A stretch of DNA of 64,000 nt, from the sequence record phage_1. One strand, 5' to 3'. The translations under genes and the position numbers were made by a program. The notes below the pieces were generated by a model, which was given only the letters and a program-made list of their open reading frames with translations, was not told the DNA's origin and did no database searches. This document shows positions 4,163 through 64,000 of the stretch, one piece after another; position 1 is the stretch's first letter, and the number at the start of each line of letters is the position of its first letter.

Positions 4163-5676
4163 TGAAAGACGTCGACGTAGCGGTTATTTATACCGATGGT
4201 AGTCATACTGAGTCCCCGAAAGGTTCGGGGGCTGGTATTCATGGTTATTTATTCAACAACGGAGATTTGGAAGACAGTCAGGCTTATAGCCATCCGGGTG
4301 TTTCANAANGGATTACCACTGTTGGATANAAAAAAGNGCCGCAGGNTGNGAAGTGTCCGGNGTTGCCGGACACCGTTNAATTTNTNGACGCCGTTNTTCC
4401 CGTTCCNAAANAGTTNTNCNCAGATGTGGGNGNGTTAATCNCCTTCATCACGTTNTTTGAGAACGCGCCCTTCCGCGCGAAGAACTATATCATCTACGTG
4501 GATGCCAGTTACGTTGTAAACACTTTTAACGAGTGGATAGACGGCTGGCATAAACGTGGTTGGGTTCGTGCTGACGGTACTCCGCTGGCGAACAAAGAAC
4601 TTATTGTTCGTATCTGGGAAATCAAACAGCAGATGAAAAAAGAAGGACGGGGTGTTAAGGTTATCAAAATCAAAGGACACTCCGGCCACTACGGTAACGA
4701 CCGGGCGGACGAATTGGCTAGAAAAGGTTCAGCCATCACAGCGACCAACGACGGCGTTCCATATCAGCCGTACTGGTCGAAGGATGAGTTGCCTGCATCC
4801 GCGGAACCCGAGCCCATCGCCGCTGGGATGAACCTTGCGGCATATCCGCCTATTTGTACGGTTAAATATTGCTATCCGTTGGTGAACGAGGACCATCCTA
4901 CTGTAAAAGTGAAAGATGAAACTTTCTATTACATGTTTGGTGGCAACCATGCAAAGAACAAGGACGACTTGGTGTTTATTGGGAAAATGATTCCTGATGC
5001 ACACTTTTCCGTAATGTTCACTAAACAACCGTGGGATAACATCTACACGATTGTAAATACCCACGCCGCCCTGGCATGGAAAGATACACCGAAGATGCGG
5101 CAGTATGATCCAATCGGTGTTGTTAACAATGAGTTCGTTAAACGTAAGAAGTTCGTTGATGTGGCAGGTGATGGATTACCGGCAGACAAGATGCATTTCA
5201 GTGGAGAAGATTCCAATGTCTGGTTCTTTGAAGACCTGGCCATCTCCAGAATGCTTCGCCCGCCCTTATTGTCGTACCGTGCGCTGGATATTCGTGATGA
5301 ACTCGCTACAACGTTGCGAGATGTTCTGCATCAGGAAAAGGGTTACGTCTTAAACGACATTACCGACTTGCTATTCGACGACAAAGGTAAACCTGTCAAG
5401 GAATACTACCGTAGCGTCGATAAGTCAATAACGTTAAAGATTGACTTTCCGATGGGTAAACGACCTGTCTCGGTTATTTTGACTCGCGGTATCGATATTC
5501 CATCACGTACGGAAATCAACCGTATTAAAGAACCCGAAGGCCGTTATTACATCGCGGTGTGTCGTCCTGAAAAATACTACATCCGTTACTTCTTAATCTA
5601 TATCGGTAAAGAGTATCATGGGTTGTGGTGTGCGTATTACGCAAACCGTCGCATACTGCGAGAAGAAGAGGTGTAA
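4162..5676 (+). CDS. rnhA: Ribonuclease HI with a long C-terminal extension
   Basis: IYTDGS, YVDASYV, WHKRGW, KIKGHSGHYGNDRADELARKG are type-1 RNase H motifs. Coupled to the exonuclease by a TAATG overlap. Confidence 0.9.
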   Translation: MKDVDVAVIYTDGSHTESPKGSGAGIHGYLFNNGDLEDSQAYSHPGVSXXITTVGXKKXPQXXKCPXLPDTVXFXDAVXPVXKXXXXDVXXLIXFITXFENAPFRAKNYIIYVDASYVVNTFNEWIDGWHKRGWVRADGTPLANKELIVRIWEIKQQMKKEGRGVKVIKIKGHSGHYGNDRADELARKGSAITATNDGVPYQPYWSKDELPASAEPEPIAAGMNLAAYPPICTVKYCYPLVNEDHPTVKVKDETFYYMFGGNHAKNKDDLVFIGKMIPDAHFSVMFTKQPWDNIYTIVNTHAALAWKDTPKMRQYDPIGVVNNEFVKRKKFVDVAGDGLPADKMHFSGEDSNVWFFEDLAISRMLRPPLLSYRALDIRDELATTLRDVLHQEKGYVLNDITDLLFDDKGKPVKEYYRSVDKSITLKIDFPMGKRPVSVILTRGIDIPSRTEINRIKEPEGRYYIAVCRPEKYYIRYFLIYIGKEYHGLWCAYYANRRILREEEV

Positions 5677-6419: not shown

Positions 6420-6438
6420 CTGAGATAGATATTATCTA
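6420..6438 (+). promoter_or_regulatory. Putative phage promoter/operator motif, copy 1 (CTGAGATAGATATTATCTA)
   Basis: 17/19 identical to 14958-14976 and 16/19 to 46615-46633; all three are intergenic and upstream of non-structural genes. Confidence 0.6.
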
Positions 6439-14950: not shown

Positions 14951-14976
14951 AAAAGAACTCAGACAGATATTATCTA
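14951..14976 (+). promoter_or_regulatory. Putative phage promoter/operator motif, copy 2 (AAAAGAACTCAGACAGATATTATCTA)
   Basis: In a divergent intergenic gap; shares AAAAGAACT with copy 3 and AGATATTATCTA with copy 1. Confidence 0.6.
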
Positions 14977-28547: not shown

Positions 28548-31500
28548 TTAGCTTGCTTTCCGACTTACGTTTAACGACGGTGTCGGTTGGGTTATTTCCT
28601 GCCTACGTGCAGCTGAGCCCGGAGGAGGCACATTTGCCGCTTGCTGGATACTACCACCCCGTGTGTCGTTTGCCGCTCTTGGATTTGATTTCAAAATATC
28701 ACGAATCTCTTTCAAGTAATCGCGAGACTGAATCAGTACCTTGAGCTGCTGAACATCTATCGGGTCACCATTCAGCGTTGGCGTCGATGCTGTAGCATCA
28801 GAAGTTGGGGCGGCAATTGGACGAGCTGCTGCGTTAACCTGCGCTTCCGCGCCTGCTTTCACTTTAGCAACATCCGTCNCAGACAATCCTTCTGCTGCAG
28901 CTTGCGACGCTACGGTTTCGGCCGTTGTTGAGGCATCGGATGTTCCGGTACCGCCTGTGGTTGGNGTAGGTGCTGCTGGTCCTACATTACCTGCGGCGGT
29001 AGCCATTGCATCTTGTGCCGCCATGGCCCCTTTCTGCGTCAATGCGTCATCACGACGATTAGCATTATCTGCTGGCAGGTTATCTGCNGGCGACAGACTC
29101 GGGTCATTAGCGGCCGGTGCACCCATTGCCGCTGCCGGGTTAGTTGGTGAATTAGGCGACAATCCTGCAACCATATCCTTCGTCTTGCTCGGAACGGCAG
29201 CGACTTCGTTGGCGGAAATTGCGCCCATGCGGCGGTTCAGTTCCTGAATAACCCCGTCTACGCTACGTATACGACCGTTGCTGTAGAAGACGTTGGCATT
29301 CCCTCTCAGTATTGCGGATGTAATCCCAGGAGCACTCGATGCCGCCATATTCGGATTACGCTTCCATGCTTCCAGGAATTTCTTACCGCCGCCTGCACCC
29401 AGGAAGTGGTACAGATAAGCCACGGCTGGNGGNGGTGCTTTACCACCCAGGTCACGTTGTGCTTTTTGGATGTTGTCACGAATGAACTGTACACCCAAAA
29501 TANCATNCNCCCNCGGGNCCNTCTGGTTAACACGCGGAANACCNAACTTCCNCGAANACCCCTTCATCATCCCGTCCCACGNGCCGTTAACAAACTGGAA
29601 CAACCCAGATGCCGAAGCATACGGGTTTTTAGCGGTGTAGTTAAATCCGGACTCCNCCTTAGCCATTGCTAACGCCACTGCAGGTGGCACGCCCATCATG
29701 TTCGCTGCATCGGTAATCAATGCTTTGATATTCGGAACGTTCAACGCACCCTTTCTACCCAACATTTCTATCGGGTATTTTTCAGCCAGTGACTTATAAT
29801 CACCGTCTTTCACTTCACTCAGGTTAATCGAAGACGAACCAGTGGTCATTGCAGCGTAGTTCCGCACACCGCCAACCGCATCGACGACTTGACCCAAGTT
29901 ACCCGGCACACCACCACTCGTACCCGATGGAATGTAGCCTGAGGCGCGAGCACCGTCAGATGACAAAGAATCTCCCGAACTGATGTTCGAGTCTTCTTCA
30001 TCTTCACCGGTAACTTCCAGAGAACTGCGGTTCTTGTTACGATCCTTCCAGCGTGCACGCTTGCCATTATTTTTAATGGCTTTAATCATGTTACGCACGG
30101 CAAGGTCAGCTTCTTTTGACAACAGCTTCAGCGTTTCCAGCTCGGCTTTGATAGACGATGGGTTCGTGTTAGCATCGCCCCCTAGTGGGTTGATGTTCAC
30201 TTCCCACACCGACTGTCTTATACCGCCTTTCAGGCTGTAGGCAGTTGACATCATCAGACTGATTTCGTACAGGTAGCCGCCGGTCAGTTTCAAGTTCAGC
30301 GGATCGGCTGTTGGCAGGTAACGCTTCACCCCAACCAAATACGTCATGAATACCGGTAAGAAGCGGTCAAAGAACCACCGTTTCAAACGATCTTCTTTCG
30401 GTGTGCCGATAGCGTCTGGAACCATCGAGGCGATGGCTTTCTTCCAGTCACCTTTATAGCTTGCGGTTTTCACGTCGATGTCTTTGATGACGTTCTTCTC
30501 GAATACCGTAATCAACGTGCGTGTGGCGTTGTCGATGGTGGTAAAACCATAAGTCTTCCAACGCACCGACTCCATCGCATTCATGTCTTTCTGGTCGAGC
30601 ACCGCGTTCCAGTCTACCTGAATCTGAACCTGCTCTGTTCCGTCTTCCCAACCTTCTACCTTCGCCAGATTTTTATTACGTTCGTTATCCAACTGTCCAA
30701 GTTTGTTGATAGCTTCATCAACACCCGCGGACTTAATCCCCTCCACGGCCGGTGCCATTCCGTACTTACGNGCTTTCTTATCGTCCATTCTGAACTTGAT
30801 TGCACNCNCGACTTCATTCTGCACTTCCATAACCTCTTCACCGCTCAAAAACTCCTTCGGTGTAAAGGTTACAACGTCCCAGGCTTTCGAGAAGAAGCCT
30901 TGGTTGACTTTGCGTGGGTCTGTTAACGAAGAGAACGCTTTTGCATCCTTAGTCATCTTCATTTTGTTGAAGAGTGTCTGCATGTCCTCTTTCGATACTT
31001 TCTTAGCATCGCCGACGTCAGCCAACTGGATACTATTCGGCATTGATTTCAGTGCCGNAATCCAGCGGAGATAAATCGGAATAAAGCGCTGAAGCATAAA
31101 CGCTTGGAAGGCCAACATCTCGCCTTTTTCCTCGACGTTAATACCGAACCCTTCAGCTAACTTCTGAACGTCTTTTCCACCTAGCCCACGGAGACTGGCT
31201 TGGCCATCTTCCGCGTAAGACACATACTCACGCAATGCGTCTTCTAAGTAACGCGCTTTCGCCCCGTCATCCGACGACCACTTATCGTAATCACGGAAAC
31301 CGTACTGAGCTAAACGCATCTTATCCAGGTACTGGGTATAGGTAGTCGTTGCGATCTTGTACNCGGCGTAACCNNCCNCGGNGNNCNCNCCACCGATAAG
31401 AATTGCCGGCCAACCCACCGCAGTCACGACGGCAGAGGCCCCGGTTCCCACNNCGGNCACCNCGGGTGCCNCCAAACGGGTTACTGCGAACTTACCAACA

Positions 31501-34500
31501 TTCCACGCAGCCTTACCTAAAAGACCTACGGGTTTTAACACACCCCATTTCGTGATAGAACCGAGTATATTACCCACAGTTCCCAAGATACTGACGATGG
31601 GGCCGATGATAGGTAAGCCTTTCACCATATCCCACAGACCGCCAGATTTCCCTTTGGAGCCCTGCNCTTTCTCTTTCTTCNCCTTNCNTTTCNCACNCCA
31701 ACNTTTGAAGAAGTTAAAGTAGTCGCGTTTTTCATCACCTTCAGGCGGCTTGTTACGTTTACCGAACTTCGCAAACATGGTACGAATAATACCATCGTCG
31801 CCACCTGCACGGGATACTGATTCGCGCATGGTGTTAAACCACGACATCTCTTGCAAGCCAATCATTCGGTCCAAGCGTTCGAATAACCTTGCACCTGCTG
31901 ACTTGGCGGCATTCTTCCCTTTGTTGATAACCCTCCCTGCTGCATCACGGGCGGTCTCAAGGTCTTCCTTCGCATCGCCGTAGACTTTACGGCCAGAAAG
32001 GCCACCTTTCGCGTTCAAATGGCTGCGATAAAACTCAGCAACATCGTCATCGCGTCCAGCCAACCGACGTTCAACTTCGTAACGTGTAGCAATGTCGTGT
32101 CGTGCTCCACGATATCCATCGAGCATATCCCCAGCCCGGCCTCGGAAACCACTGAACCAACCNCGCAGGCNGTCGCGTCCACGACCAAAGAACGCTTTTG
32201 TTCTTGACCAACGTCCACCAAAACGTTCAGACAATGACGATTTCGCACGATCATACGCCCCGCGTACTGCACGACCGATCGTACTACCGCCACCCCCGAC
32301 GCCCTTCTCCATTTCCTCTGTCCAACTTTCGTCTTCCGGATCTCCCGGTAAACGTTGGTTCAACAGTTTATAGATACGGATAAGGATGTGGTTGGTTTTC
32401 TTGCCGGTTGATGAGAAGAGACTGAAACCACCACCCCCACCATCTTTACGGCCTTTCCACCAACGCGTCAGTGGGTTGTCGGTAANCATGTCTTTCAGAC
32501 GATCGACACCACGTTTCGCAAAACCGAGCACTTTACCCGGTAAGCTCGTTACACGGTTGAACGCTTTCTGGAGACGTGTCTTTTCTTCGCCTTCCGGAAT
32601 CTCGTTCAGCCAGTCCTTAATCTTACCAACGATGCTGCCTGCTTTCGGTGACAGGAAATCCAGGAACCGCTTCGGTAGCTTAGCCACCTTATTAAAGCCT
32701 AAGCCAATCTTACTGGCCAGACCTTGGGTCAGTGCTTGGATTTTCCCGCCTTTATAGTAGCGGAGTTTACCCGCAGCGGCTAAGTCAGCGGCTGCTAATA
32801 CCAGATTACCTGCGGAGTCAACAATATCACTCCCCAGTTTGATGTCGTCCAGCGTTTTCAGCTGAACCATTTTACCATCAATGACCTGATAGTATTCTCC
32901 AGCTTCCAGACGTGCACCTTGCAGAACAACGTTACCGTGGTCATCGTAAACATCGCGGATACCCAGTAGTCCTTTACCGAAGGAACTTACCGCTTCAAAA
33001 CCACCACGGACACTACCACTGATAAGGCCACGCATCCGGGTTAAGAAACCAGGACCTTCGCCACCTCCCATGCCTGCGACTTTACCGCGTGCCCAACCAC
33101 CGAACTGGTTCAGTTTATTCCAGGCACCCTTAACACCACGTTTCGCAAAGCCGCCGATTCCTGCTGCGGTGTCGAACAANACACCGCCCCAACGACGAAT
33201 AAGCCCATCCTCACCGATGATAATACGACGGCGTCTACCGCCACCGCTACCACCACCAGGGCGAGGCGGACCCATTTCTTCATCACCAGAACCAGCACCC
33301 CCTGCTAACGAAGCCAGAAGAACCCCTTCTTCGTCCATACTTCTGACGTGTTCCAGAATTTTCTGGAGGGTGTCACTGTTGTTGTTACCACGAATCGCTT
33401 CGATGATACCGTCAAAGTTATTCCGTGGTGCTTCTTCGCCGCGGTTACGTTGACTCAACAATTCAACAAAGTTAGTCGAGGTTTTACCGTAGAGAACTGC
33501 GGCTAACTGCCGAGGCGACATTCCGCGGCCTTTACCACCGCCACGTAAANCNGGNGGTAACGACGTGTCATCGGCACCACCACTTGCCCCTTGGTTCATT
33601 CGGCGCAGATAGTCGCCTAACGCCGAACCATTTTGCAGCTTACGTTGAATCTCCTGGTCACGAGTCAATGCGCGCCCGCTGCGTGTCTTACCCATCGCCA
33701 AGTCATTAAACAAGGTATAGGGATCGGACAGGTCTTTATCCACGCCGAAGGTGTCACTCTTCGCGTCGTAGTTAAAGATACCCGCATCACGCAACGCTCG
33801 CTCGCCGTAAATATTCACCGCCTCGTCGATAATTGCCTGACGTTGGGTGATAGATGACTGCACTGTGGAGATTTTGCGAGCCAGTTCGTTACTTAATTCG
33901 TTGCTACCACCGAGTAAGCTGTCTGAATGCCCCTGTAACGCTTCCTTAATGCGTTCTGCGGCGTTTCCTGGCATATACCGATGAAGATGCATCGGGTCTT
34001 TCAGAATCGCTTCTACGTCGAATGCGCGGCCCTGCGAGGCACGTGACTCGATATAGTCGGCAAGATGCTGTCGATCCTTCTGCGAGAGCGTTTTGCCACG
34101 GTCAACAAAATCCACAGTGCTGTTAATGGAATTTTGGAGACGCAGGCGCTGCTCATCGTTTGCAACCGCTTTGCGTACACGGTTACCGACCACTTTGCGG
34201 TCTACGAAACCACGACTGGTGATGTCGTATTCCAGATCGGCATGTTCGCCATAGCCACGACGAACAGATTTGTTAATCTCTGCCAGCCAGGCAGGAATAA
34301 CTTCAACCAGGCTAAGATACGCTTTACGGTCAAACTTCGCCGAACGACTTAACGTTTCGCCATTACGCTCATCGAGGAAGGCTTTCTCACGGTTTAACGG
34401 TTGGACAATACCGAGTTCATTCAGTACCCGGAACAAATCCGCCAACGGTCCTTGTGTTTCGCCTGCGATAGCTGAGTTCGAGATAGAGGAAAGATTACCA

Positions 34501-35669
34501 AAGGTGAACGCGCCCTTCTGCAGGCGTTTCATGACCTCTGGATTTTTCTCCATCTCCTCACGAGTCCATTTCTGGAGTTTCTCGATTTGTGGGCCGAGTA
34601 GTTTCTTCGCAAGGAATCCGCTACCCCATGCAGTTGCTTTATCGCGAGCATTTGTTTTGCGACGTTCGGCAGTCAACGAAGAGCTGTCGCTCATGCCGAA
34701 ATCGTCTTCAACACCCATGCCGAGAACAGACTCTAACAAACCACGACCTTCGCCAAATATACCAGAAATTTTCTTCTTGGTATTTTCGCGAATCATGTCC
34801 ATAAACCCGTCAGCATAACGCAANGGGTTCATCCATTCCGCAGCCTGGCGTTTAACGTTTGCCCAACGGACTTCTGAGAAATCTTCCTTCGCGTAGTCTG
34901 GCAGCGCCGTGTTCTTCACGATGGCTTCTAAAGCAGGCGTGTTACGATCGAACTCCGACTGCTTCATCTTCACGATGTCTTGAATGGCGAACAGGGTACG
35001 GTATTGCAATTCGAGTTTCTTACGCTCGATGTTTAAGAATACCCCACGGCTTAACCCGGTTAGCAGGTTAATGTCTTTCGCCATCCCAATCATGGTTTGG
35101 TGCATTGCATCCGCGCGCATCTCTTTGATGCTGTCGCGGAGCTTATCCTCTACCATGCGGTCCTGCAGTTGACGTTGTTCGTCGGCGTCCTTTGGCACGC
35201 CTGAGAAAACGTCGCCCAGTTCACGATCCATCAATGCCTGATTAGGATCGTAATTTTGGTAATCCAACTGGTCAGATTTTGACCACTTGTCGATGCGCTT
35301 AGTAACTGCATCCGGCAAGTATTTCTTCATCGTCGGACCGAGTTGGCGCGCTTGCATCTTCAGCGTGCGCTCGGTCTTCTCAAGCTCCCCTTTCGTATGG
35401 GCGTAAATGTCCTTTGCTGCAGCTGCCGCTGACTGATAACCCTCGTATGCATCAGCTGCCGGCTTAGGCATCCCCTTGAGGATAACTTGGTCGCGTTTCC
35501 CTTCTGGCCAGATAGTTGACATCGCCGACTTCCTGGCAACATTCAGGGTACTGAGTATCGGGCTTCGTTTTTTCTCGTCTTTGGGACGGGGNGGTTCNCC
35601 NAAANCNTCCCANTCGTCGANTNTATCTAAATCNATATCATCNAAACCNTCTTTNCCTCTTTTTGCCNT
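28548..35669 (-). CDS. Tail tape measure protein with a lytic transglycosylase (SLT) domain (phiKZ gp181-like)
   Basis: ~2370 aa, Gly/Ala/Lys-rich; AMAKxESGFN...ASGLFQF is the SLT catalytic motif. Start re-placed at the N-masked AnG codon (35669). Confidence 0.85.
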   Translation of the reverse strand, partial: XAKRXKXGXDDXDLDXXDXWXXXXEXPRPKDEKKRSPILSTLNVARKSAMSTIWPEGKRDQVILKGMPKPAADAYEGYQSAAAAAKDIYAHTKGELEKTERTLKMQARQLGPTMKKYLPDAVTKRIDKWSKSDQLDYQNYDPNQALMDRELGDVFSGVPKDADEQRQLQDRMVEDKLRDSIKEMRADAMHQTMIGMAKDINLLTGLSRGVFLNIERKKLELQYRTLFAIQDIVKMKQSEFDRNTPALEAIVKNTALPDYAKEDFSEVRWANVKRQAAEWMNXLRYADGFMDMIRENTKKKISGIFGEGRGLLESVLGMGVEDDFGMSDSSSLTAERRKTNARDKATAWGSGFLAKKLLGPQIEKLQKWTREEMEKNPEVMKRLQKGAFTFGNLSSISNSAIAGETQGPLADLFRVLNELGIVQPLNREKAFLDERNGETLSRSAKFDRKAYLSLVEVIPAWLAEINKSVRRGYGEHADLEYDITSRGFVDRKVVGNRVRKAVANDEQRLRLQNSINSTVDFVDRGKTLSQKDRQHLADYIESRASQGRAFDVEAILKDPMHLHRYMPGNAAERIKEALQGHSDSLLGGSNELSNELARKISTVQSSITQRQAIIDEAVNIYGERALRDAGIFNYDAKSDTFGVDKDLSDPYTLFNDLAMGKTRSGRALTRDQEIQRKLQNGSALGDYLRRMNQGASGGADDTSLXXXLRGGGKGRGMSPRQLAAVLYGKTSTNFVELLSQRNRGEEAPRNNFDGIIEAIRGNNNSDTLQKILEHVRSMDEEGVLLASLAGGAGSGDEEMGPPRPGGGSGGGRRRRIIIGEDGLIRRWGGXLFDTAAGIGGFAKRGVKGAWNKLNQFGGWARGKVAGMGGGEGPGFLTRMRGLISGSVRGGFEAVSSFGKGLLGIRDVYDDHGNVVLQGARLEAGEYYQVIDGKMVQLKTLDDIKLGSDIVDSAGNLVLAAADLAAAGKLRYYKGGKIQALTQGLASKIGLGFNKVAKLPKRFLDFLSPKAGSIVGKIKDWLNEIPEGEEKTRLQKAFNRVTSLPGKVLGFAKRGVDRLKDMXTDNPLTRWWKGRKDGGGGGFSLFSSTGKKTNHILIRIYKLLNQRLPGDPEDESWTEEMEKGVGGGGSTIGRAVRGAYDRAKSSLSERFGGRWSRTKAFFGRGRDXLXGWFSGFRGRAGDMLDGYRGARHDIATRYEVERRLAGRDDDVAEFYRSHLNAKGGLSGRKVYGDAKEDLETARDAAGRVINKGKNAAKSAGARLFERLDRMIGLQEMSWFNTMRESVSRAGGDDGIIRTMFAKFGKRNKPPEGDEKRDYFNFFKXWXXKXKXKKEKXQGSKGKSGGLWDMVKGLPIIGPIVSILGTVGNILGSITKWGVLKPVGLLGKAAWNVGKFAVTRLXAPXVXXVGTGASAVVTAVGWPAILIGXXXXXXGYAXYKIATTTYTQYLDKMRLAQYGFRDYDKWSSDDGAKARYLEDALREYVSYAEDGQASLRGLGGKDVQKLAEGFGINVEEKGEMLAFQAFMLQRFIPIYLRWIXALKSMPNSIQLADVGDAKKVSKEDMQTLFNKMKMTKDAKAFSSLTDPRKVNQGFFSKAWDVVTFTPKEFLSGEEVMEVQNEVXXAIKFRMDDKKXRKYGMAPAVEGIKSAGVDEAINKLGQLDNERNKNLAKVEGWEDGTEQVQIQVDWNAVLDQKDMNAMESVRWKTYGFTTIDNATRTLITVFEKNVIKDIDVKTASYKGDWKKAIASMVPDAIGTPKEDRLKRWFFDRFLPVFMTYLVGVKRYLPTADPLNLKLTGGYLYEISLMMSTAYSLKGGIRQSVWEVNINPLGGDANTNPSSIKAELETLKLLSKEADLAVRNMIKAIKNNGKRARWKDRNKNRSSLEVTGEDEEDSNISSGDSLSSDGARASGYIPSGTSGGVPGNLGQVVDAVGGVRNYAAMTTGSSSINLSEVKDGDYKSLAEKYPIEMLGRKGALNVPNIKALITDAANMMGVPPAVALAMAKXESGFNYTAKNPYASASGLFQFVNGXWDGMMKGXSXKXGXPRVNQXXPXXXXILGVQFIRDNIQKAQRDLGGKAXXPAVAYLYHFLGAGGGKKFLEAWKRNPNMAASSAPGITSAILRGNANVFYSNGRIRSVDGVIQELNRRMGAISANEVAAVPSKTKDMVAGLSPNSPTNPAAAMGAPAANDPSLSXADNLPADNANRRDDALTQKGAMAAQDAMATAAGNVGPAAPXPTTGGTGTSDASTTAETVASQAAAEGLSXTDVAKVKAGAEAQVNAAARPIAAPTSDATASTPTLNGDPIDVQQLKVLIQSRDYLKEIRDILKSNPRAANDTRGGSIQQAANVPPPGSAARRQEITQPTPSLNVSRKAS

Positions 35670-35698
35670 AANNTTTNTTCCAATTNAGGAGNTTAAAA

Positions 35699-37312
35699 AT
35701 GACAAAGCTAAAATGGGTTNACTTTTACTTGTTAAACNNCAACAAGTCCCTGGTGTCGCATTTAAAACCAGTTACAACAACAGACACCTTTCAGGGACTG
35801 ACGAAAAACTTTCACCCTGAAGGACTGTATTCAACCGAAATTTTTGGCCTCACAGGGAGCGAAGCACGAGACTCAACGTTCTCGTACATTGATATCAAAC
35901 TGGATATCATTTCGCCGACCGTTTGTTTGGCATTGTTCCAGCTGAAACAGCTGTACGAAGAAATCTGTTCCGGGAAGCGATTCGCTATCTGGAATGAGAA
36001 AGAAAAAGATTTCGAGCCGGCTCTGCCCAGTGATAAAGGTGCAGACACCGGCTTCAACTTCTTCCTACGCTACTACGAACAACTGACACCGGGACGCAAC
36101 GAATCGATGCGTCGCGACGAGACAGTCGATTTCTTCAATAAGTTCCGTCCGGTCAGTCTCAGCCGCTATGTGCTGGTTCTGCCTGCGGGATTACGTGATT
36201 TGGTCATTCGTCAGGATGGCCGCGACCAAGAAGAAGAGATTGGCGGACTCTACCGTCGTCTGATTTCTCTGGCGCGTGCAATCCCCGACCGCAGTACGCG
36301 AACGGAACTGACTGACCCGGTTCGCTGGAAGCTCCAACAAACCTTTAATGATATCTGGATGTACTTCTTCAACATCCAGGATGGTAAAGGTGGTTTTGCA
36401 CGTCGTAAAGTGACGTCACGTAAGTTAATGAACGGTACGCGTAACGTACTGTCTTCATTCTCAACCGGTTCCAAGGTCATGGGTCGCGAAGATGCGATTC
36501 GTCCAACGGATACCCGTATCGGTTTGTACCAAACCCTGAAGGCATTACTGCCTGTGGCTCAATACCACATCCGTGAACGTTACCTCAGTAACATCCGGGC
36601 AGGGGACGGCAACTTATACGGCGTTAACACCAAAACACTCAAGCGTGAGTTCCTGGAAGTCTCCGGGCGGGTGTATGACCTTTTCACTACCGACGATGGC
36701 ATCGAAACACTCATCAACAGAATGGAAGCGCGCGAGCTTCGACATAAACCGCTGATGATTGATCCGGACCATTACGTGGCATTAATCTACCAGGACAAAC
36801 GCAGCTTCAAAATCTTTTACGATATTGAAGACCTGCCGGAAGGACGTGACCGCAAGCTTGTCCGCGGACTGAGCTTAGCAGAACTCCTCTATTTGTCAGG
36901 TTACGATATTTGGAATGACTACTTCTCGTTCATCACGCGTTATCCGGTTACGGGACGCGGTTCGACTTACTCCTCGACCATAAGATTGGAGACCACCACC
37001 TCTTCCCTCTATTTGCATGAACTGGAAGACGATTGGGNCACGTTAAAAGANAAGGGNGCAATTNGNTTCCCTGACCGTACCGTGAAAACNTTTGTGGAAT
37101 CCATGGCACCACATCCANCCCNATTAGGGGGNTTGGGNGGNGACNACGANGGNGACACCGGCNCANCAAANAGCCCGATGTCAACCGAAGCGCTCGNGGA
37201 AAATCGGAAGTGGGTCAGTTCGAAAAACTACTGGTTTGCAACAGACGGCAGTTTCAAAATCAATCCGGTTAACAACGTGATTAAAAGAACGACTGCTGCG
37301 CTGTTGAAATGA
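35699..37312 (+). CDS. Virion RNA polymerase, beta' N-terminal (catalytic) subunit
   Basis: AGGAG SD; EGLYSTEIFG, LVLPAGLRD and TRNV are RpoC-like; the N-masked codons at 37142-37156 read D-x-D/E-G-D. Confidence 0.85.
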   Translation: MTKLKWVXFYLLNXNKSLVSHLKPVTTTDTFQGLTKNFHPEGLYSTEIFGLTGSEARDSTFSYIDIKLDIISPTVCLALFQLKQLYEEICSGKRFAIWNEKEKDFEPALPSDKGADTGFNFFLRYYEQLTPGRNESMRRDETVDFFNKFRPVSLSRYVLVLPAGLRDLVIRQDGRDQEEEIGGLYRRLISLARAIPDRSTRTELTDPVRWKLQQTFNDIWMYFFNIQDGKGGFARRKVTSRKLMNGTRNVLSSFSTGSKVMGREDAIRPTDTRIGLYQTLKALLPVAQYHIRERYLSNIRAGDGNLYGVNTKTLKREFLEVSGRVYDLFTTDDGIETLINRMEARELRHKPLMIDPDHYVALIYQDKRSFKIFYDIEDLPEGRDRKLVRGLSLAELLYLSGYDIWNDYFSFITRYPVTGRGSTYSSTIRLETTTSSLYLHELEDDWXTLKXKXAIXFPDRTVKXFVESMAPHPXXLGXLXXDXXXDTGXXXSPMSTEALXENRKWVSSKNYWFATDGSFKINPVNNVIKRTTAALLK

Positions 37313-46606: not shown

Positions 46607-46633
46607 AAAAAGAACTGAGATATATATTACTTA
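46607..46633 (+). promoter_or_regulatory. Putative phage early promoter motif, copy 3 (AAAAAGAACTGAGATATATATTACTTA)
   Basis: Follows a terminator and heads a run of small non-structural genes; contains TATTAC, the reported phiKZ early-promoter core. Confidence 0.65.
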
Positions 46634-57671: not shown

Positions 57672-57710
57672 CCTCCACCCCTTCGGGGGTGGAGGTATGG
57701 AGATTGTATG
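57672..57710 (+). promoter_or_regulatory. Hairpin plus TATG late-promoter candidate in the terminase leader
   Basis: CCTCCACCCC-TTCG-GGGGTGGAGG with no U-tract, then TATG (57696-57699), GGAG, a 5-nt spacer and ATG 57708. Confidence 0.5.
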
Positions 57711-59819
57711 ATACTGCGAAAAAACGATTGGCGACACTATCCGGGGGCGATTGTTGACGACGTCACACCAAACGTGCACTTCCTTCAATTCGCCACAACA
57801 CTACAAGGATTAGGTGTCCAGCATTGGTACGTCCACCTGGCATTACACAATCCCGAACTCCGTGGTGTTGATCCGTTTAGCCCGGATTTAACACTCGAAC
57901 AAAAAGCGATGATTGTTACGGAGTGTGCGGAAAACCCATGGTACTTCTTCCGTGAGTGTGTCCGGGTCCCTGCGGATGGTGTAAAGAACGGGATGCCGTT
58001 TCGTCTAGACCGCGGTAACTTTTCGATGTATTGGATTTTCTTCAACAACATCGACGCCGCTATCGAGTTTCTCCGTCAGCATGGTAAGACTGTCGGGATG
58101 TCCGCATTGCTATTGTGGCTGATGCGCTTCCTGGAGAACTCACGTACGATTCTTATCACGAAGGGTCCTGCCCTGCGTGAAGAAACTATCAACAAAATGA
58201 AACAACTGCGTAACGCGTTACCGGATTATCTCTGGCCTCATCACCCGGACGATCCTGATAACCGTGAGACATTTGCATGTCTAGCGNAGGGTAACAAACT
58301 TATCACCGGCATCGGTCAAAACGATAAGGAAGCTGCGAACGGGGTAGGCCGTGGACTCACAGCCGGACGCCTGTTCTCGGATGAAGGACCGTTTACCAAC
58401 AACATCCACCATATCCTCCCTGCTGCACTAGCATCGGGTACCGCGGCGCGTCGTATTAACGAAGCCGAAGGTGTTCCATACGGCAACGTCTTCGCAACAA
58501 CGCCTGGGGATTTGGCGACAGAAGAAGGCGAGTACATGTACAGCCTGATGACGTCGGGGATTTCGTGGGATGAACGGTATATCGACATTCCGACTCGTGC
58601 ACAACTGATTGACATGATTCGCAAAGGCTCTACTGCGAAGATTCCACGTATCATGTTCTACGTGAAATACAACCACCGCCAACTCGGTACCACGGACGAA
58701 GAACTCGCAGATATGATTGCGAACGCCCCAGGTACACCAGACCAAATCCGCCGTGACTTCGGTGGTGAATGGACAACCGGTGGTTACAACAAACCGTTCT
58801 CAGGCGATGATGCAAGACGTATGAACGCCTCGCGTATTCGGGCAGCACAGAAAATTATCTCTGCTTCCAACTACGTAACGGATTGGTATTACACCGAAGA
58901 ACAGATGCTGGTTAAAATGCAAGACCGCCACATCATCGGTTTGGATACTTCCGAAGCCGTGGGACGTGACGCCATTGCCATGTCAATCGTCAACTCTGTC
59001 ACTGCCGAATATGCCGGCAAGCTCACCGTGAACGAAACAAACGTCATCGGGTTTGCGATTCACCTAGCAGACTTCATGATCGAATATCCGAACACGGTAC
59101 TCATTCTGGAACGACGGTCTACCGGCTCCTCGGTAGCAGATGCCATCATACTGCAGCTGCAATCTAAGGTTCGCGATTTGCATCGTCGTTTGTACGTGAA
59201 AGTGACCCAGGATTACTCAAGGAACGATGAACTTTACAAAGAGTTCCATCGTGGCCCTGTGGGCAGTCCAGAGCGCTTCTGGGACAAATTCCGTAAATAC
59301 ATCGGTTTCTCAACCGACCAGGATAAACGCCGTAAGTTGTATGGTGAAGTATTTACCACGGCGTTGCGTCTTTCTGCGGACTTACTGCGGTCAGGCGAAT
59401 TGATCGACCAAATCCTCGGTCTCGTCGAACGAAACGGGCGCATAGACCACCGTGCATCCGGTCACGATGACCTGGTAATATCCTGGCTCCTGGCAATGTG
59501 GTTACTTCTGTTCGGCAACAACTTAGGCCACTACGGTATAAGTAACAGCCGACTGATGATGCGCAACCGCAATATGCTCGGGGGCACGGCAGGTGAATTC
59601 GATGAAGAGGCTGCAGTCGAGGAAGAAGAAAAGCAACAACAACTGATGGGGCAAATTGAAACGATGATTAGGCAGAGTCAAGTTGTAGCCGACCCGGTAC
59701 AACAGCTCATGTACAAGAATCGTATTCAAGCGCTCGTCTCTCAACTCAACACTGACGTTCGTAACGTCGCATCGATGGAAAGCTTGAAAGAGCTAATCCA
59801 ACGACAGAGGATGAAGTGA
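57708..59819 (+). CDS. terL: Terminase large subunit
   Basis: Walker A LRQHGKT, Walker B LFSDEG, motif III TTPG, nuclease IGLDTS and HDDLVISW. Confidence 0.92.
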   Translation: MILRKNDWRHYPGAIVDDVTPNVHFLQFATTLQGLGVQHWYVHLALHNPELRGVDPFSPDLTLEQKAMIVTECAENPWYFFRECVRVPADGVKNGMPFRLDRGNFSMYWIFFNNIDAAIEFLRQHGKTVGMSALLLWLMRFLENSRTILITKGPALREETINKMKQLRNALPDYLWPHHPDDPDNRETFACLAXGNKLITGIGQNDKEAANGVGRGLTAGRLFSDEGPFTNNIHHILPAALASGTAARRINEAEGVPYGNVFATTPGDLATEEGEYMYSLMTSGISWDERYIDIPTRAQLIDMIRKGSTAKIPRIMFYVKYNHRQLGTTDEELADMIANAPGTPDQIRRDFGGEWTTGGYNKPFSGDDARRMNASRIRAAQKIISASNYVTDWYYTEEQMLVKMQDRHIIGLDTSEAVGRDAIAMSIVNSVTAEYAGKLTVNETNVIGFAIHLADFMIEYPNTVLILERRSTGSSVADAIILQLQSKVRDLHRRLYVKVTQDYSRNDELYKEFHRGPVGSPERFWDKFRKYIGFSTDQDKRRKLYGEVFTTALRLSADLLRSGELIDQILGLVERNGRIDHRASGHDDLVISWLLAMWLLLFGNNLGHYGISNSRLMMRNRNMLGGTAGEFDEEAAVEEEEKQQQLMGQIETMIRQSQVVADPVQQLMYKNRIQALVSQLNTDVRNVASMESLKELIQRQRMK

Positions 59820-63227: not shown

Positions 63228-63234
63228 GTCACTA

Positions 63235-63283
63235 GGCGTACTCTCTTCGGGGAGTACNCCAATNTTNTTTTTTTTGTTTTTTT
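63235..63283 (+). terminator. Intrinsic terminator
   Basis: GGCGTACTCTC-TTCG-GGGAGTACnCC followed by a long T-tract. Confidence 0.85.
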
Positions 63284-64000
63284 AACCAACCGGTTAAAGG
63301 GGTCTGGGAAGCATCAGAAAACGATTAGGTGGTATCGACGTAGGGTAGCTCGTTTTTGGCAGTTTATCGTTTTCTAGGGTCAGTTACGTGCGTTTTAGAG
63401 GGGGTTATGTATCGAGACAGAGAATTTATTTTTGTCGGGGCGAGGAAATTCAGGGAATGGGGATTCAGGATTGTATGTTTTTTAACCAGTTATTAAAAAC
63501 GCTCTAGAAAGCGCTAGAACGAGATTTGTACCAGACCCAGTACACTTGGGTTCCCCCTACCGGAAAATCGCGCCAGCGGGCCGCTGAGAGCGCGAGAGTG
63601 CCATTCCCGTTTCGGTTCCGAGGTGACGGTCGCGGCCGGCGACGACGATCACACGTTGGGTAGCACTTCGTGCCATGTCTGGGTGAAAACTGGATCGTTC
63701 TGTAACCGACACACACTGTCGGTTACTTACGAGTTCTTTGGGTTGTTTAACTCGCTCTAAAATCCCCCTTAGGGGATAATTTAATCTAATTCTCAAAATT
63801 TCTTTTTAAAACAATCACTTAGATTGTTTTTTAGATTGATCCTGTGGATCGGGTCGAAGACCCTTTCCTTATACGCGTGCGCGTGCGCACACCCGTATCC
63901 TCCAGGATCTTTTAAAATATATAATAATATTAAATATAATAATACCTTTAGGTATTATATTTAATTATTATAATTATTTATATAAATAAATATATTAATA
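63281..64000. repeat. Non-coding region with an array of short inverted repeats and an AT-rich end
   Basis: At least 11 hairpin-forming palindromes read directly (e.g. 63702-63726, 63808-63830, 63939-63958); only 4 G/C in 63911-64000. Confidence 0.75.

Follow-up and report, generated by a model that had tools for sequence, protein, structure and literature searches.

Where, and how, do the nucleus-forming jumbo phages begin to copy or package their DNA? The literature that we searched, including a 2026 jumbo-phage review, describes no origin, packaging (pac) site or large non-coding RNA (ncRNA) for SPN3US-like or other nucleus-forming jumbo phages, in line with the remark, in an initial annotation of the DNA studied here, that no origin is defined for this phage group. 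We address the question through a locus at the right end of a 64,000-nucleotide (nt) stretch of phage DNA (sequence record phage_1; hereafter the window), on which the same literature holds nothing and where that annotation had noted a dense array of short palindromes at 63281–63960, proposing a cruciform-rich origin or DNA-handling site, or a long structured RNA. The locus is very probably a functional and conserved non-coding one, and the reading that we tentatively favour, on the strength of sequence comparison, is that it may be a transcription-coupled replication origin.

The array is part of a larger feature. The last 801 bases of the window are 99.6% identical to Escherichia phage vB_EcoM_Lh1B (Lh1B), and the window, whose end is the exact end of the 240,200-base Lh1B record, corresponds to the last 64 kb of that record; about 30 SPN3US-like phages of Salmonella, Escherichia, and Proteus align at 93–97%. 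The window genome is that of an SPN3US-like jumbo phage of the genus Seoulvirus, whose members are phiKZ relatives that build a nucleus-like shell. Because the window end cuts the feature, the palindrome array covers only the left arm (~63470–63913) and most of the core (63910–64000) of a locus of ~1.75–1.77 kb without open reading frames (ORFs), which continues over the first 984 nt of the record (Lh1B 1–984; L057). Records that are not cut here have an ORF-free gap of ~1.77 kb, located in SPLA3 at L001 3529–5300, and the locus is single-copy in the genome. The description of the array as the longest non-coding stretch of the window is borne out, the 773 nt from 63228 to 64000 containing no ORF of at least 80 amino acids (aa) and the next gap measuring 170 nt.

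All 11 palindromes listed in the initial annotation are present exactly where it places them, and their density is well above expectation. Counting perfect hairpins (stem of at least 5, loop of 3–20), we found 21 in 63281–63905 compared with 8.7 ± 3.0 in 1,000 dinucleotide shuffles (P < 0.001), a density 2.4 times that of the shuffles; for stems of at least 6 the numbers are 9 and 1.9. The best other 625-nt interval in the 64 kb holds 19 hairpins, making the array's 21 the highest count. Folded as RNA, 63640–63913 has a z-score of −4.3, and the whole left arm gives z-scores of −1.5 to −5.8 on both strands over 10 lineages. Two outcomes had been named as telling against the array, a hairpin density equal to that of shuffled sequence and a lack of conservation in relatives, and neither was found.

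Conservation extends well beyond close relatives. A syntenic gap of 1.1–1.7 kb is present in four genera, for which we compared sequences from Seoulvirus (SPAsTU, pEa_SNUABM_29), Erskinevirus (phiEaH2, Stratton), Machinavirus (Huxley, pSal-SNUABM-04, pEa_SNUABM_4, 6, 9, and 43, ChrisDB, Caitlin), and Wellingtonvirus (Kwan, pEa_SNUABM_11), together with four IMG/VR contigs. Three anchors occur in the same order in 19 of 19 sequences, namely ACCCRGTAC, GGATCTTTT 344–402 nt further on, and then GACGAGAGGGG; other invariant motifs of the locus include TCCTNCAGGATCTTTT and GGCGGCTCGGRAAGACGAGAGGGG. The locus is confined to one family of ~240 kb jumbo phages, that of SPN3US, phiEaH2, Machina, and Wellington. 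Non-coding identity in the left arm is 74% to SPAsTU and 71% to pEa_SNUABM_29, and in the right arm 82% and 80%, respectively; the flanking genes are 64–85% identical in the same comparison, so the locus is conserved to a like degree, and at the level of these alignments it is shown to be under purifying selection. Invariant blocks of 15–50 nt alternate with variable blocks without a 3-nt periodicity, indels between relatives (13 nt, 1 nt) are not multiples of three, and no reading frame is kept in relatives. We also considered a decayed coding sequence or pseudogene and rejected it on the non-triplet indels and the alternating, non-periodic blocks. Nor is the locus the leader of one gene, since the gene that follows it differs between genomes, Lh1B for example having an extra 191-aa gene there.

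To resolve the left arm we divided it into slots S1–S12, and for each slot summed the hairpin energy over 10 lineages and compared it with dinucleotide shuffles. Seven of the 11 listed palindromes sit in hairpin slots that are kept across genera with changed sequence; the palindromes at 63281–63298, where relatives have A/T pairs only, and at 63574–63586 are not conserved and probably reflect chance. A plain MAFFT alignment of the left arm does not bring hairpins of unrelated sequence into register, so that RNAalifold retrieved no more from it than S3, S5, and fragments, and for this reason we used the per-slot energy tests and a covariance-model alignment. A covariance model built on helices S6–S8 from Machinavirus-type sequences only finds the window at 63643–63786 (E = 1e-5). 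In the model alignment of 15 sequences, which is fitted to the structure and thus favours it, 96.1% of cells pair, compared with 73.6 ± 1.6 in shuffles, double-sided changes occur in 17 of 20 pairs, and the covariation score is 0.574 compared with 0.185 in shuffles, while slid partners score at most 0.149. None of 500 shuffles reaches the S6–S8 score, and the covariation across relatives that the initial annotation had proposed to look for is therefore significant.

The individual helices illustrate how completely the stems are rewritten. S6 (63697–63732, + strand; z = −9.0) is a 10-base-pair (bp) hairpin, GTAACCGACA/TGTCGGTTAC at 63702–63726, replaced in relatives by GTATCC../..GGATAC, GTAATTCGCA/TGCGAATTAC, GACAAAC../..GTTTGTC, or GAGAGAC/GTCTCTC, with double-sided changes in 7 of 9 pairs. 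S7 (63732–63757, + strand), the hairpin UGGGUU-guuu-AACUCG inside the listed palindrome CGAGTT/AACTCG (63730–63754), has double-sided changes in 5 of 6 pairs and many U.G and G.U pairs. S8 (63757–63782, + strand; z = −7.1) is ATCCCC-CTTA-GGGGAT (63762–63777), with a loop consensus of C-Y-Y-Y-A and double-sided changes in all five pairs; relatives have CCCGGC/GCCGGG, GCCAGC/GCTGGC, or CCGGCC/GGCCGG, and the Wellingtonvirus lineages are without S8. Two further helices covary on the plain MAFFT alignment, which is not fitted to structure. In S3 (63531–63555, + strand), the hairpin ACCCR-GTACAYN-YGGGT at 63535–63551 is present in 17 of 17 sequences, one of its pairs being A-U in 5, G.U in 8, and G-C in 4 of them and the adjacent pair G.U in 15. 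S5 (63653–63682, + strand) consists of an invariant CGATCAnACGTTGGGTA and then a small covarying hairpin, GCAC-TTC-GTGC, whose stem occurs as GCAC/GTGC, GCGC/GCGC, CCGC/GCGG, or ACGC/GCGT (5 and 3 double-sided changes).

Because the whole-arm minimum free energy (MFE) z-scores do not separate the strands, we took the polarity of the hairpins from G.U versus A.C counts. The ratio in the window helices is 58:3 (34:1 in S6–S8 and 24:2 in S3 and S5 together), and this excess is not compositional, since the + strand of the left arm is not G-rich and has slightly more C than G. In addition, S3 (z+ = −2.1, z− = +0.2) and S7 (z+ = −3.2, z− = −1.1) are stable on the + strand only. The G.U excess and this one-sided stability therefore point to single-strand hairpins of the + strand, which has the same sense as the flanking genes, and we consider it likely that the hairpins are + strand single-strand structures, most simply RNA. 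A double-stranded DNA element acting by cruciform extrusion, with no RNA involved, is by comparison highly improbable: S6, S8, S10, and S11 do fold about equally well on both strands, and GC-rich alternating tracts and an AT-rich core are typical of DNA that responds to supercoiling, but hairpins of the complementary strand would carry A.C mismatches, S3 and S7 are confined to one strand, the stems are short (5–10 bp), and the right arm has orientation-specific terminators and GNRA loops. The cruciform-rich origin suggested in the initial annotation is disfavoured for the mismatches and short stems and for the lack of iterons and DnaA boxes, whereas its suggestion of a long structured RNA gains from hairpin positions that are kept over four genera while the stem sequences change, from covariation and polarity, and from the + strand terminators of the right arm.

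By their polarity the left-arm hairpins point at the AT-rich core, which occupies 63910–64000 and a further 8 nt in the record. With ~107 nt at 5–6% GC (4–16% across 63900–64000), it contains the lowest-GC 100-nt interval of the 240 kb genome, at 5% compared with 23% for the next. Its central palindrome, ATAATACC/GGTATTAT at 63939–63958, covaries (ATACC/GGTAT, ATCCC/GGGAT, ATATC/GATAT), relatives having ATATCCC/GGGATAT or ATATC/GATAT. Nine GATC sites within 450 nt around the core form the densest cluster in a genome in which GATC occurs at 2.0–2.4 per kb compared with ~3.9 expected from base composition, and GATC lies within the invariant motifs CGATCA, CAGGATCTTTT, and CGTGATCCTTATTA; in most lineages there are GATC clusters on both sides of the core. 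No other place in the genome is as easy to melt or as rich in GATC. The annotation of the same genome includes a DNA adenine methylase (Lh1B record 99759–100577). Elsewhere, the densest GATC cluster has 7 sites in 450 nt and lies at record position ~80294, inside a virion structural gene.

Three slots lead up to the core. S10 (63808–63863) is a slot of strong hairpins of variable sequence, here three (63808–63830, 63838–63850, and 63851–63863), and every lineage has an 8–11 bp GC-rich hairpin of unrelated sequence in it, without strand preference (z = −6.8 on the + strand and −6.4 on the - strand); GGGTC/GACCC at 63851–63863 is GGGATT/AATCCC in relatives. S11 (63870–63898) is a GC-rich alternating purine/pyrimidine palindrome (CGCGTGCGCGTGCGCAC; z = −5.2 on the + strand and −4.9 on the - strand) that is kept in all lineages while its sequence varies. 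Such palindromes bracket the core as a direct repeat, with S11 as the left GC clamp. S12 (63894–63913), the invariant TCCTnCAGGATCTTTT, includes GATC in 17 of 17 sequences and forms the left border of the core. The suggestion of a DNA-handling site is accordingly strengthened for the AT-rich core, given its GC minimum and GATC density, and not for the rest of the array.

One kind of DNA handling would be packaging, with the core as a pac site at which terminase recognises the GATC-rich flanks and cuts in or near the AT-rich centre at a time set by methylation, the flanking RNAs being unrelated neighbours. GATC clusters flanking a ~100 nt centre, an annotated phage adenine methylase, the single copy of the locus, and a large terminase gene (57708–59819) 3.4 kb upstream all speak for this, as do assemblies that break at no fewer than five points within ~250 nt (~63744, 63774, 63903, 63945–63953, and 64000). 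The records of SPN3US, SPFM2, SPFM16, SPFM17, Proteus phage 7, SEGD1, JN03, EC001, and Lh1B start or end in the locus, and several SPFM records align here in 12–19 pieces, the stretch being hard to sequence or assemble. Such breaks are, however, equally expected from poor coverage of hairpin-rich DNA at 5% GC. We find no conserved hexamer like that of phage P1, the bases that flank GATC in the locus being variable; pEa_SNUABM_4 and _9 have lost the right-hand GATC cluster; the neighbouring genes include no recognisable terminase small subunit; and ~1.5 kb of covarying polar hairpins would be left unexplained. We regard a pac site as unlikely.

The right arm lies outside the window and carries three or four conserved + strand terminators, each a hairpin followed by a T run, with compensatory changes in the stems (L057 210–235, 288–327, and 416–448). 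Further on, the invariant 3′ motif ATCTTGGCGGCTCGGAAAGACGAGAGGGG (L057 864–893) precedes a helix whose GNRA loop reads GAGA, GUGA, GGGA, or GCGA. In the MAFFT alignment of this 3′ block (15 sequences), 95.1% of cells are paired, double-sided cells number 40 compared with 16.2 ± 2.8 in shuffles (0/500), the covariation score is 0.340 compared with 0.196 (0/500), and G.U outnumbers A.C by 94:4. The invariant 3′ motif is found in 11 IMG/VR contigs, all of this jumbo phage family, and has no match in 185,579 bacterial and archaeal genomes. A motif, TTTTTTAC(A/G)GG, stands just to the right of the core (L001 4405–4440, L057 92–103) and, in most relatives, a second time past the 3′ block; beside the core, TATG (Erwinia phages) or TGTG (Seoulvirus) follows ~20 nt on. 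TATG is the start-site motif of phiKZ late promoters, and TTTTTTAC(A/G)GG might serve as the T run of a terminator, as a late promoter, or as both.

Covariation, polarity, and terminators all fit a stand-alone cluster of + strand ncRNAs, either one long or four to six shorter RNAs that act in trans or as stable RNAs in the manner of those from the T4 tRNA region, in which the core would be an AU-rich spacer or a promoter/terminator zone with no role in replication or packaging. A tRNA-Trp gene lies ~1.2 kb downstream, the palindrome at the centre of the core shows the covariation of an RNA hairpin, and the phiKZ-type phages studied so far express small RNAs. We nevertheless find an ncRNA cluster of this kind rather doubtful, because it does not account for a spacer that is the extreme GC minimum of 240 kb, for the concentration of a genome-depleted GATC in invariant motifs, or for the GC-rich alternating palindromes that bracket the core, and because no Rfam family matches. 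The comparison with Rfam by Infernal that the initial annotation had recommended brought no family to its gathering score. In Rfam 15, which includes GOLLD, ROOL, riboswitches, introns, tmRNA, and RNase P, there is no match in the locus; at E ≤ 10 the window part and the full SPLA3 locus give chance matches of at most 17 bits against thresholds of 42–204, and at the gathering threshold the window and six relatives give tRNAs only. ARAGORN detects neither a tRNA nor a tmRNA in the window.

The terminators also bear on a further explanation, in which the locus is a transcriptional boundary, that is, a stack of terminators and promoters between the late terminase/structural block and a set of small, probably early genes, with hairpins that terminate transcription or affect RNA stability. 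With the terminator of the upstream gene included, as many as six terminator-like hairpins of the + strand stand in 1.75 kb, and early-promoter-like motifs start a few kb downstream (record positions 4804 and 7768). Within the window, however, most hairpins have no T run. The initial statement that the stems lack U-tracts is right for most of them and wrong for 63808–63830, which ends in a T run of its own, and for 63851–63863, which is followed by TTTCCTT. Taking as intrinsic terminator a GC-rich hairpin directly before a T run, we find none among the window hairpins; terminator-like ones are the weak cases at 63762–63777 and 63851–63863 and one on the - strand at 63521–63500. One strong terminator already closes the upstream operon, and insulation needs neither long invariant unpaired motifs nor a GNRA-capped covarying element. 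A boundary of this kind seems quite unlikely.

We return to the transcription-coupled origin. A + strand transcript would fold into stem-loops S3–S12 during its synthesis and run into the AT-rich core, where transcription, the RNA, or both would open the duplex and supply or position a primer. DNA synthesis would then proceed rightwards, in the same direction as ~85% of the genes. The phage's own annotated methylase would mark the GATC sites by adenine methylation, and they would be read through this mark.

Several observations weigh against such an origin. The locus has no DnaA box (TTWTNCACA) on either strand and no iterons, its short direct repeats being two-copy only and outside the low-complexity AT core forming no tandem array. 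A G-rich RNA segment, which would stabilise an R-loop, is likewise absent, and S4 has no consistent G/C skew. No promoter was identified for the left-arm RNA, and the early-promoter-like motif of this genome, described below, is absent from the locus save for one 10/12 match, which lies in the low-complexity core and is without the CAGA part. The cumulative GC skew, a further check recommended in the initial annotation, tracks gene orientation only, its minimum here being an artefact of the point at which the record begins. pEa_SNUABM_4 and _9 lack the right-hand GATC cluster, and Caitlin has a reduced one. S1–S2 fold slightly better on the - strand, the S6–S8 alignment was fitted to its structure and covers only ~10 independent lineages, and the hairpins could be formed by + strand single-stranded DNA instead of RNA, G.T wobbles being tolerated there as well.

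The remaining elements of the left arm are less structured. The left border of the non-coding locus is the terminator of the upstream 169-aa gene (63236–63275, + strand), a GC hairpin with a long T run that contains three N; a hairpin and T run are present at this position in all genera, and a terminator scan calls the equivalent site in SPLA3. N is not peculiar to this T run: 247 single-base N are scattered through the window (e.g., 971, 1458, 63258, 63265, and 63268), and Lh1B slices also carry N. Next comes a 5′ extension (63281–63469, + strand), defined from alignments, that is found only in Seoulvirus, other genera having ~60 nt there. It includes the weak A/T palindrome at 63281–63298 and is 71–74% conserved within the genus; it yields no evidence of covariation, and the ORFs in it are broken by indels in relatives. 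S1 (63470–63500, + strand), recognised in the alignments, is the conserved motif TTGTnnnnTTTTTAACCAG, of which most lineages have a second copy directly behind the upstream terminator. S1 shows no consistent structure, its summed MFE being like that of shuffles (z = −0.8). S2 (63499–63529), seen in both alignment and fold, is the hairpin slot of TCTAG/CTAGA (63503–63518), with CAGAA/TTCTG in relatives; it folds slightly better on the - strand (z+ = −0.45, z− = −2.9), where a short T run follows.

S4 (63553–63647) is the GC-rich core that the initial annotation had placed at about 63560–63660, and 63550–63650 is indeed 68% GC. This spacer has 61–73% GC in all lineages, a variable sequence, and no structure (z+ = +2.3); it contains the chance palindrome at 63574–63586 and is not coding, because of a 13-nt indel relative to other phages. 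S9 (63782–63823, + strand), likewise unstructured (z = +0.5), is a conserved AT-rich motif, AAAATTC-TTTTTAAAACA-nnn-ACTTA, for which a role as a protein-binding site or promoter element is possible. As recurrent promoters, both S1 and S9 were rejected, each being unique to the locus.

A motif that does recur, tTCAGATAGATATTATCT / AGATATATATTACcTAGGTGAGA, has ~25–30 copies in the genome on the + strand (in the window, for instance, at 6423–6437, 14961–14975, and 46618–46632), where none are expected by chance. It can also be written AGATAGATATTATCT / AGATATATATTACyT, often with tTC before it and TAGGTGAGA after it, and lies ~40 nt upstream of start codons, often just past terminators. It fits the published description of jumbo-phage early promoters and is probably the early promoter for the virion RNA polymerase in this phage group. 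The window has two other AT-rich features. Its second-lowest GC spot, with 25% over 100 nt at ~35600–35720, is the junction of a - strand 2385-aa ORF (28548–35705) with a + strand ORF that starts at 35699, and is probably a divergent promoter region. The 10-nt palindrome ATTTCGAAAT has six copies and is the most frequent AT-rich 10-mer of the window.

The neighbouring genes give little guidance. To the left stands the conserved 169-aa gene and to the right a variable gene set, followed by the HslV-like peptidase gene and tRNA-Trp. The neighbouring proteins, searched for a terminase small subunit or an initiator, belong to PHROG families of unknown function and have no Pfam match, and the AlphaFold model of the 169-aa protein (predicted local distance difference test score, pLDDT, of 52.7) is too poor for a structure search. 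The extra 191-aa gene of Lh1B (L057 985–1560), between the locus and the HslV-like gene, has no PHROG or Pfam match and is missing from SPLA3; other relatives have different genes at this junction, which marks it as a hot spot of gene gain and loss. In Erwinia phage Kwan a putative HNH endonuclease gene lies inside the right arm (L056 3403–3912), an insertion that moves the 3′ block further from the core, to ~1.47 kb.

Judged on these features, the locus is the strongest candidate so far for the site at which these phages start replication or packaging. It joins an evidently RNA-like structure to the most extreme base composition of the genome, and narrows the search for where and how DNA copying or packaging begins to one region of 1.75 kb. 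It also adds a sizeable predicted RNA family that is absent from Rfam, and it would account for the many assemblies of these phages that break there. Bolder statements, that it is the origin of nucleus-forming jumbo phages working through a multi-domain RNA, or a giant RNA of ~1.5 kb and of a new class with a role in replication or packaging, are possible but somewhat doubtful. If the former were true, it would be the first origin defined for these phages, one in which a structured RNA reads into a methylation-marked unwinding element; a single RNA of ~1.5 kb would be comparable in size to GOLLD or ROOL.

Among known systems, herpesvirus oriLyt offers an analogy only: it too is a kb-scale, complex, ORF-free region of a large DNA virus with a nucleus-like compartment, and is associated with non-coding transcripts, as is predicted here, but there is no sequence relationship and the locus has no repeated binding sites. 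With enterobacterial oriC the locus shares an AT-rich element and clustered GATC, in hosts that use Dam, and its GATCTTTT-like and GATCCTTATTA-like motifs presumably bear a loose resemblance to the oriC 13-mers, which we take as a lead only. It differs in having no DnaA boxes on either strand, and, unlike the setting of oriC, phages of this group replicate in a protein shell with their own enzymes. GOLLD and ROOL, and the small stable RNAs encoded by the T4 tRNA region, resemble it as large phage non-coding regions with many covarying helices, GNRA loops, and a tRNA gene near; on the other side, no covariance model matches, and an AU-rich, GATC-rich core interrupts the locus. In phage P1, two clusters of the GATC-containing hexamer TGATCA/G flank the pac cut site, which lies inside a terminase gene, and adenine methylation times the cut. 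Here, too, two GATC clusters flank a central region in a phage with an annotated adenine methylase, yet the hexamer is not conserved, the centre is ~100 nt of nearly pure A/T, the locus is not within a terminase gene, and its right-hand cluster is dispensable in some relatives.

The closest parallels are with origins that depend on transcription. The T7 primary origin and T4 oriF and oriG consist of a promoter and then an AT-rich unwinding element, and in our locus, likewise free of iterons, transcription would enter a short, extremely AT-rich stretch. It differs from them in that ~450 nt of conserved structured sequence stand upstream, and not a promoter alone, and in that the early-promoter-like motif of the genome is absent. 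ColE1 is a plasmid, whereas this is a phage with its own RNA polymerases and no mapped promoter at the locus, and we found no antisense regulator, RNase H site, or G-rich hybrid-forming segment. Nevertheless, ColE1 RNA II is likewise an untranslated series of stem-loops, several hundred nt long, that leads toward the start site of synthesis, as the predicted transcript would here, and the hairpins of the locus have the right polarity and are aimed at the AT-rich core. By analogy, the locus would work most like RNA-primed or promoter-plus-unwinding-element origins such as those of ColE1, T7, and T4 oriF/G.

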